A stretch of DNA of 63,632 nt, counting the filler, from Choristocarpus tenellus KU-1152 (taxonomy: Eukaryota > Protista > Phaeophyceae), in NCBI GenBank assembly GCA_964200185.2. It is 10 parts of 10 records of this genome, joined end to end, with 100 filler letters (N's around TTAATTAATTAA, not from the genome) between each part and the next. Parts side by side here need not be neighbours in the genome. Positions count along the whole stretch, not along the records: positions 44,262 to 47,439 come from CAXNAD020021747.1; 9 more parts are not named here. One strand, 5' to 3'. Numbering within the stretch: position 1 is the first letter of the stretch; the number at the start of each line of letters is the position of its first letter. The translations under genes and the position numbers were made by a program. The notes below the pieces were generated by a model, which made no database searches, was not told the DNA's origin, and saw only the letters and a list, made by a program, of their open reading frames with translations. Of the stretch, positions 44,262 through 47,439 are shown one piece after another.

Positions 44262-46490
44262 GGGTGATCGGAGTGGAGGCCATTCAGGGGAATACCCCAG
44301 GGGACAAGGGGGGGGTGGGGATGGAGATGTGGAGGGGGAGGGTGGGGAAGGTGGGGAGGACAGTGGTAGGGAGTGTGCAGAGCAGGGTGGAAGGCTGGTG
44401 GCTGAGACCTGGGGTGGAGCAGGAACTATACCAAAAAAGTGGGTGCTGGGGTGGGGGAAAGGTAAACTATGGGGGGGGGGCAGAGACCAGGAGAAAGTCA
44501 AATCCGCCACATTCCCTGCCACGGGGGCCTGGCGGGGTATTGTGAGGTCTGGATCAAAGAGTGAGGGTCGAAGCATTGACACCATCACTGCAGGCACCTC
44601 CATTGGTACCCATGGTTACGGTTCCCTTGGTGATGCTGAGCTTGAAGCACGTAGAAGGATAATGGACCGAGAATTGAATGCCATGCGTCTGGCTATTACT
44701 CACGACTTTGATGCCCGTTTCCCTCCACCACTCAAGTGCTGTGCCCCAGGGTGTGATCGAACTTTCACCGAGGACAGCCACTATCGTGAACATTGGGCAG
44801 GACTGCAGAAGGTAGACACAGTAGCAGCACCCCTGAGCTCTAGGCAACCTCTTGTGGAAGGAGCAAGGGGAGATGGTAAGATGCTTGTGAAACCGAAGTC
44901 GCAGATCGGGACTGGGCTGGTACAACTACCAGTATCATCCTTAGAGTCAGGATCAAGGTCTGAGTTCTGTTTGTCTAAAGCAAAACCATGTGCACACAAA
45001 GATGTTCCTGCAGTCACAGAAGAAGGTCACCCTGAACTTGGGTTTGTGGAGGTTGCAGCTTTCCACTTGGCAGTAACAGATACACAGACAGGAGGTGCAG
45101 AGGCGGTTACCACTTACATCTTGAGAGAGTGGGGGGCAGGGAGTGCGCTGCACACTCTGTTATTCTGGGAGGCTGTTGACCTCTGGAGGTGTCACTTGCA
45201 AGGTGGTTTGGGGTCTAACTTTGTGTTGGATGCTCTTCAAATGTACAAGACGTACCTCTGCTTGCATGCTCCACGAGCAGCAACTCTATCACAACTGACA
45301 CGCCAAGGACTGTGCAGGGACTTGGGAGAGGCTCAGTCTATTGTAGACCAAAGTGGAATAGTAGACGGAAAATCACTTCAGGTACAAGGCCAGGAGATTG
45401 CAGGGCACAGTCCGGGGATGGTGGGTGAGGGGATGAGACACAAGCATACTGGTGCTGGTGTTGGAGTGGTGGCAGGTCAAAGATCTGTCACGACAGGAAA
45501 GACTCAAGTGAGGAGAAGGCGAAGTGACGTAGTCACTGGTGAACTGACATGGGAGTCATTGTATGTCACATCAGGGGGGGGGGGCAATAAAGGAGATGAG
45601 GTTTCCACCAGAGAACCAAAATGGAGGAGGGACAAGGCAGATGGGAAGATGAAATCAATTATTCGTCCAGGGATGTTTGATCAGGCCCAGTGGGAGGCCC
45701 TTCAGCACCTTTCCGTGGCTGTTGGGTCAGGTTTCTGGGCGTCTGATCTGGGACAACAGTATGCCTTGATCTACATGAGAGAGGTTGAGAGGAAGAGGTT
45801 GGCAGCCACCATGAGCTACAAGATGGAGGTTGGGAAAGAAGGAAGATGACATGCACACATACAAGTGTTGTTGCCAAGAAAAGCCATCATCATCTCTTTG
45901 CCCTTTGTTCTCTTCCTTCTCTCTCCCTCCTCCCTCCTCCCTCCCCTCCTTGCACATTCCTACTCATCTATCTCTCTCCTCCACCTCCACTTACTTTTCA
46001 CTGTTCTATTGCGTGCCAGTTAATAACAATATGGTCTATAGGCAATGCTACTACTACTACTGCTACCACTGCTGCTACATTATTACCAACATAGAAATAA
46101 AATACCTTTGTGTGTAATAATTTCATTAAGGCTGAGGGGGTGGGAGGCATGGCCCAGGTAGGAGCACTTTCAACAACAAAATTGTACATTGGTTACCAAG
46201 AGTAAATATGATGCATTGCGGCCCTTGTACCATTACCTTATCTTGTCAATCTCAGCATGACTCCTTGGGTTGTGCCATCTATGTGTCGGTGGGGTGTGTA
46301 TACCTTTTCTTTGCAGCGGAGAGACAGGCTCCTCAATGAGGCAAGAGAGGTGAAACAAACCCTGTTTCGTGCGAAGGAGATGAGGGTGATGGCTGTCACA
46401 ACTCAGATCCTGGACATTGTACTGGAGACAGTGTCTGAGACCCTGCTCAAAAGTATGGTGGCCAGGGCAGAGGCTATTGTCATCACCGAG
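44262..46490 (+). CDS. Zinc-finger (C2H2-like) plus RGS-domain protein, partial
   Basis: Exon open from contig start to 45828 (GAG|GTTGGG), then exon 46317..46490. CCAPGCDRTFTEDSHYREH finger. RGS hallmarks LLFWEAVDLWR, ALQMYKTYL...AP, MFDQAQWEALQHL, FWASDLGQQY. Confidence 0.75.
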
Positions 46491-46492
46491 GT

Positions 46493-46751
46493 GAGTGAAA
46501 GTATCTTAGGGGGTACGATTTTTGCCCTGTTTGTCCATTTGGGGCTTGGCTTCCCACAGTTTTTGTTTTTGACATTTTACCTACTCCGAAATGTTTCGGA
46601 GTTTAAAATGCCTATGTTATGAAAAGGTGTGCCAGGAACAAGGATATTGACACTTCTTAACAAACACGATAGCCAAAATTACATGAAAATTGCAACATTG
46701 GATTTTGGCCCCCAAACGGACACGACTCTACCCTATAACATACTTCGACTC
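46493..46751 (+). mobile_element. MITE family A inserted at an exon end, TSD AGGT
   Basis: ...CACCGAGGT[GAGTGAAAG...TTCGACTC]AGGTGAAG. Confidence 0.93.
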
Positions 46752-47194
46752 AGGTGAAGAAGCTGCACTGGAATGTACATTTTACATTCCAGCTCATTCT
46801 TCTGTGGATATATCAGTATCAATATATATTCATATTTAAATAGGATAAATTGCTTTGTCCTCCTCCAAGGAGTCGGAACACAATACTCACACATTGCTAT
46901 TTGCAACATGGCTCAGAGCTCAGAATGTATCAACCCCTGAAAGATTCAAGAGAGCTCAGTAATATAGCTTATCTGTTGCTGCTGCTGCTGCTACTACTAC
47001 TGTATATTTTATTATTTTGGAGCATTTTACTTGTGATGGTGGTTTCACTAAGTTAAAGAAATATATATATATATATTCAAGTTGTTAAAAAAATGTTACC
47101 AATATATATCAACAGCAAATAAATGTAAGCCAAGAAAGTCGAAACTGATTGGTTCTCACTTTTATTGAGCACTTTGAACCAGCAATATTCACTG

Positions 47195-47439
47195 GAGTGA
47201 AAGTATCTTAGAGGGTACGAGTTTTGCCCTGTTTGTCCATTTGGGGCTTGGCTTCCCATTTTTTTTTTAATGACATTTTCCTACTCCAAAATATTTAGGA
47301 GTAGGTAAAATTTATGTTATGAAAAGGTGTGTCCGGAATAGGGATATAAAGACATCCTAACAAACACGATAGCCAAAACTATATCAAAATTGCAACATTG
47401 GATTGTGGCCCCCCAAAATGGACACGTATCTACCCTCTA
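47195..47439 (+). mobile_element. MITE family A, right end cut by linker
   Basis: Left TIR intact; runs to TACCCTCTA at the gap. Confidence 0.9.

Follow-up and report, generated by a model that had tools for sequence, protein, structure and literature searches.

The locus described here lies in Choristocarpus tenellus, on a piece of 3178 bp (positions 44262 to 47439), itself a complete contig, within a window of 63,632 nucleotides, the whole stretch of DNA that was analysed. The plus strand of this piece carries the visible part of a protein-coding gene, and two copies of a MITE lie downstream of its second exon, the first of them inserted exactly at the exon/intron boundary. The features are as follows.

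44509 to 45828, plus strand: visible part of a large coding exon, an open reading frame ending ...MSYKME in phase 0 at 45828 (GAG/GTTGGG)
45829 to 46316, plus strand: intron 1, 488 nt, GT..AG, phase 0, 44% GC, partly retained in run X3
46317 to 46490, plus strand: exon 2, 58 codons (RRDRLLNEAREV...AIVITE), in phase 0 at its start and end; the protein model P0001 joins it to 45828
46489 to 46492, plus strand: left TSD AGGT, straddling the exon/intron boundary AG/GT
46491 to 46496, plus strand: present 5' splice site GTGAGT, made up of GT from the TSD and GAGT from the end of the element; apparently in use
46493 to 46751, plus strand: MITE copy 1, 259 bp, with TIRs at 46493 to 46515 and 46729 to 46751 and an internal palindrome at 46574 to 46602
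46752 to 46755, plus strand: right TSD AGGT, in which AG (46752 to 46753) is a candidate acceptor and GT begins the ancestral donor GTGAAG
46756 to 47194, plus strand: original intron-2 sequence, AT-rich (34% GC), including the non-coding VKKLHW stretch
47195 to 47439, plus strand: MITE copy 2, in the same orientation as copy 1, ending with the contig; its left flank is CACTG, not AGGT

Read-derived data came from four runs of one study (X1 to X4), used as Logan contigs; their library type is unrecorded, and none is recorded as RNA. X1, X2, and X3 derive from organism A and X4 from organism B, and the sample behind X3 (S3) differs from that behind X1 and X2. Homology searches were run exon by exon. 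Six orthologues (P0002 to P0007) were found and genomic contigs were fetched for four of them, with L002 to L004 reaching far enough downstream to be compared. At 44296 and 44301 the piece has C and G where all three organism A runs have T and C, a discrepancy due either to an error in the assembly or to a fixed difference from the samples that were sequenced.

The large exon is 100% identical to the partial NCBI protein P0001 of C. tenellus and 30 to 35% identical to the orthologues P0002 to P0007, and it carries a C2H2-like motif and a helical region that is possibly RGS-like. X3 contig 17 spans it from 44508 and breaks at its end, 45828. The P0001 model joins 45828 to 46317 (...YKME to RRDRLL), and X3 contigs break at both edges of the intervening intron (45828 and 46315); the orthologue gene calls read through the intron-1 position at ...E/V. 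Exon 2 is matched by X3 contig 19 over 46315 to 46490 with zero mismatches. P0001 (414 aa, partial) ends 11 codons into this exon, covering 46317 to 46349 of the window. In X3, the depth over intron 1 is 20.8 versus 36.9 to 38.9 over the flanking exons, or about half, and intron 2 is uncovered. This half-depth may reflect regulated or inefficient splicing, and translation of a transcript that kept intron 1 would terminate at the stop at 45847 to 45849.

The host family was found only among brown-alga-like contigs, and its main part has no Pfam family: neither the host protein (at E ≤ 1) nor the six orthologues (at E ≤ 0.1) matched one. Searched against the PDB, a seven-sequence profile returned a C2H2 zinc finger (E 0.003), with RGS8/RGS16 reaching only a non-significant E of 0.14 to 0.3, and an AlphaFold model of the host protein (pLDDT 44) was too poor for a fold search. 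The RGS identity that the original prediction gave to the gene was not confirmed. Invariant in the family are a C2H2-like motif, LKCxAPxCxRTFTxDxHYxxHW, and the helices FW.AV..WR and FD.AQW.AL.HL...G.GFW.SD.G, which are weakly RGS-like; the family also has a coiled-coil exon and a last exon with an IQ-like motif and a WW domain, the Pfam WW match of the last orthologue exon (E 5e-5 to 3e-4) falling below Pfam's cut-off. The piece, which ends at 47439, contains neither the conserved exon 3 nor the WW-like last exon. The gene is split across contigs, probably through an assembly break within MITE copy 2. The last exon of the orthologues, used in a profile search, retrieved 24 relatives, including Ectocarpus, none of them identifiable as Choristocarpus.

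The element at the end of exon 2 is a MITE: it is short and non-coding, has TIRs and a TSD, occurs in high copy number, and has sharp termini. The original prediction had placed a family-A MITE exactly at the end of the exon 46317 to 46490, with the 4-mer AGGT duplicated, and this is what was found; at fixed boundaries, a 4/4 match between the two TSDs has a chance of 1/256. The TIRs of copy 1 are 23 nt long and complementary at 18 of 23 positions. Its longest open stretch is 43 aa, leaving it without coding capacity, and a word search with the element-encoded open frame gave no match. Copies 1 and 2 are about 85% identical, rising to 93% over the first 72 nt, and copy 2 is cut at ...TACCCTCTA, before the position of the right-TIR AG. 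Both copies hold an internal palindrome (CTCCGAAATGTTTCGGAG in copy 1; at 47283 to 47311 in copy 2) and differ most just 3' of it. The left terminus was fixed independently by contigs of other copies that diverge exactly before the base corresponding to 47195 of copy 2 (762 in X1, 523 in X2, 207 in X3, and 34 in X4). The family is very abundant, with a summed depth over the element of 1e5 to 1.5e6 versus about 14 on single-copy flanks. Across the four runs, the bases immediately preceding the element have an A/T-rich consensus (AAAT, AACA, TTAT, and ATAT), and in some contigs (TA)n adjoins the element. Because of this flank consensus and the CACTG beside copy 2, AGGT is apparently not the usual target of the family. 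Copy 1 also departs from the family majority at several internal positions. The MITE was absent from eight fetched loci of other brown algae, including the three most divergent (L005 to L007), and exact 24-mer scans of viral and metagenome contigs returned no copy of it.

Insertion at this point created a set of splice-like signals, and the original description of them proved accurate. A donor, GAG/GTGAGT, is present at 46490/46491 and a candidate acceptor, CTCAG/GTGAAG, at 46753/46754; removing the 263-nt unit between them yields exactly the empty-site sequence ...CACCGAG/GTGAAGAAG, which at the sequence level regenerates a 5' splice site, ...CACCGAG/GTGAAG. No AG occurs from 46673 to 46751, and a TAAC motif has its A at 46738, 15 nt before 46753; the stretch before the candidate CAG acceptor is 65% pyrimidine, with no competing AG for 79 nt. 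Downstream, a frame stays open for 29 codons, to a stop ending at 46843. Relative to the sequence that the left TIR predicts, the right TIR has 4 differences in 23 nt, a G-to-C change among them. Ordinary neutral decay, as expected of an old copy, would explain the loss of the right-TIR AG. When folded in isolation, the element RNA forms a long hairpin (-85.7 kcal/mol, z -2.7) in which donor positions +2 to +6 pair with the right end of the element. Such predicted pairing could weaken the donor rather than strengthen it, and the suggestion that the insertion supplied a stronger donor is purely an argument from the consensus.

Comparison with orthologues establishes the age of the intron. In L002 (6856 to 7029), L003 (8417 to 8590), and L004 (5007 to 5180), the exon-2 homologue follows ...ag/, has a length of exactly 58 codons, and ends in GAG/gtaggc, GAG/gtagag, and GAG/gtaagg, respectively. 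The introns that follow (325, 277, and 725 nt, in the same order) end in ...ag/ and lead into a conserved exon 3 (LE..E.EM.AEAAT.E..W..EP) and then a last exon with the WW match. In Ectocarpus sp. 12 (L008), where only the 3' boundary of the intron is visible, exon 3 starts right after ...cttgctgcag/. Because the same boundaries are found in L002 to L004, together with the Ectocarpus acceptor, the intron at 46490/46491 is ancient and common to brown algae, in agreement with the published picture of brown-algal intron positions as old and stable. The proposal of a newly gained intron (an introner) therefore fails, since the orthologues already have an intron at the exact codon boundary. The empty site, CACCGAG/GTGAAG, resembles the orthologous donors and is of the normal GAG/GTRRR type.

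The sequence following the element is non-coding. The open VKKLHW frame had been put forward as possible coding sequence. It has no tblastn match in the orthologues, its GC content is 31% versus 52 to 53% in the exons, and the orthologous exon 3 is unrelated to it; for annotation, this frame should not be called an exon. Peptides of the orthologous exons 3 and 4 found no match in 46754 to 47439, so the next exon lies beyond the contig end. Intron 1 (46046 to 46071) and intron 2 (46986 to 47002) contain similar (CTA/CTG)n microsatellites. The depth at 46046 to 46071 in X1 is 50 to 60 times single copy, indicating that the motif is repeated in the genome.

The read-derived contigs bear on how exon 2 is joined to the rest of the transcript. 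X1 and X2 look like genomic DNA, with contigs that cross from the exon 31 to 32 nt into the element, one of them running from 44344 to 46521. In X3 the contig ends fall at 45828, 46315, and 46490, coinciding with all three splice boundaries that the gene model and the orthologues had given independently; judged from these break positions, X3 appears to be RNA. X3 contig 19 (1897 nt) matches the piece up to 46490, beyond which its remaining 1721 nt have no counterpart there; we infer that it represents a spliced mRNA in which exon 2 is joined at 46490 to an exon farther away. X3 depth is 0 in the unique part of the intron at 46806 to 47017, downstream of copy 1. A 46490^46754 joint was not among the joints listed for any run, and contigs of this kind drop rare forms and short-lived intermediates. 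The prediction that the element might be spliced out alone, through a 46490^46754 junction, is not borne out by X3, in which contig 19 passes from 46490 into sequence that the piece lacks and depth downstream of the element is 0. Because exon 2 leaves the piece at 46490 in X3, replacement of the donor is supported, not splicing of the element. This favours the fallback that the prediction had offered, namely, insertion into an old donor that now supplies GTGAGT, and the orthologous intron does pre-exist at this position.

We consider it highly probable that the MITE struck the AG/GT of an existing 5' splice site and lengthened an ancient intron rather than creating one. According to this model, a high-copy, non-autonomous TIR MITE would have inserted in the AG/GT at the 5' splice junction of a phase-0 intron of ancient origin, with the 4-bp duplication leaving AGGT at each end. 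The left copy would preserve the exon end and the GT, and the first bases of the element, GAGT, would complete the donor, turning GTGAAG into GTGAGT, which would appear to be at least as good as the old one. The old donor, GTGAAG, would have been displaced 263 nt downstream, behind a CAG. Splicing would then proceed from 46490 to the conserved next exon beyond the contig end, with the element, the old intron, and the second MITE copy removed together as one intron of at least 949 nt. As intronic MITE insertions go, the case is ordinary except for the unusual exactness of its position, and it is a clean natural example of a transposon striking the most sensitive bases of a gene without harm. 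Of interest for intron evolution, the TSD copies an AG/GT junction and the element end resembles donor positions +3 to +6, which is the sequence logic of introners; the locus shows how near an ordinary MITE comes to making an intron, with no intron gain shown.

Several other readings of the locus deserve consideration. The same mature mRNA could arise in two steps, in a recursive or stwintron-like manner, if 46491 to 46753 were removed first and the regenerated GAG/GTGAAG then served to remove the rest. The sequence would permit such a route, with a consensus donor, a CAG acceptor, a TAAC, and an AG/GT exactly regenerated; the predicted TIR hairpin would bring both sites together, and nested introns within donors (stwintrons) occur in fungi (PMC12403724). 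However, the joint that this route would produce is missing from those listed, X3 depth is 0 at 46806 to 47017, where the intermediate would appear, and the 3' splice site, which lies 263 nt from the donor and has a putative branch point, competes with the ancestral acceptor. Since no feature requires such a step, we regard two-step removal as unlikely. Insertion of an introner into a continuous exon, with the TSD-derived GT and AG spliced and VKKLHWN... coding, has in its favour only the logic of the sequence: excision would restore the pre-insertion state exactly, and 29 codons stay open. This reading is almost certainly wrong, given an intron that three orthologues already have at this codon boundary (with its acceptor side also seen in Ectocarpus), a tail of 31% GC that has no homologue and reaches a stop after 29 codons where orthologues have two further conserved exons, and a transcript-like contig that departs from the piece at 46490.

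Alternatively, the insertion may have damaged the exon-2 donor, leaving a decaying or mis-spliced allele, with the X3 contig derived from an element-free allele or a paralogue. Folding predicts that the donor lies within the TIR stem, the NCBI model ends inside exon 2, and X3 comes from a sample (S3) other than that of X1 and X2, all of which would be compatible with damage. Nevertheless, X3 contig 19 shows 100% identity to exon 2 over 176 nt, and contigs 17 and 18 match the piece perfectly over 1.8 kb; an empty-site allele would run into the sequence from 46754 onward, which is uncovered in X3. The exons are also intact and in frame, and GTGAGT is canonical. We therefore find a damaged donor very unlikely and retain donor replacement within an ancient intron as the preferred reading.

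The insertion at 46490 shares the following features with known intronic MITEs: the element is 259 bp long, has TIRs and a TSD, encodes no protein, and is present at very high copy number, and the intron that contains it holds another copy 702 bp downstream. It differs from them in that the C. tenellus insertion lies at the splice junction, between intron positions +2 and +3, making the donor a chimera of TSD and element. The TSD of the C. tenellus MITE is 4 bp and not TTAA, and no autonomous partner was seen. Introners are intron-generating transposons of Micromonas, Aureococcus, dinoflagellates, and others (PMC9860276, 10.1101/2020.10.14.339549). The C. tenellus insertion resembles them in having TIRs and a TSD that could in principle provide the two splice sites, and in that excision of the unit would restore the original sequence. 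Unlike introners, however, it occupies an ancient intron position and gives no sign of being spliced as a unit, AGGT is apparently not its usual target, and no set of element-defined introns is known in the C. tenellus genome. Recursive AG/GT ratchet sites and the fungal [D1,2] stwintrons (PMC12403724) offer a further parallel, in that an internal GT..AG unit abuts the donor and its excision would yield a functional donor again. In contrast to these systems, the C. tenellus arrangement is a possibility at the sequence level made by the TSD, with no intermediate in the contigs and no conservation, and unlike introns with recursive sites, this one is short enough not to need removal in two steps.

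A broader possibility is that the family constitutes a latent introner in brown algae and that, at the 46490 locus, the element might leave first as a nested intron. The termini, 5'-GAGT... and ...CTC-3', would complete the two splice sites at any 4-bp target reading AGGT. TIR symmetry further predicts an internal GT (bases 3 and 4) and an AG 12 nt from the 3' end in typical copies, and use of these internal sites would leave an in-frame footprint of 18 nt (2 + 12 + 4). Read from sequence in this way, a latent introner is quite improbable; if it were true, with exonic C. tenellus copies spliced by one or the other route, the family would be the first introner-like one in the Phaeophyceae, where introns are otherwise reported to be ancient and stable.

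Two further observations concern the distribution of the family. It is also present in X4, from organism B of the same study, in contigs matching 46616 to 46724 and 47198 to 47315. One X3 contig aligned at 47195 carries TAGGGTTAGGGT, a telomere-like repeat, a few bases before a MITE start, and a copy of the MITE may thus adjoin telomeric or interstitial telomere repeats.
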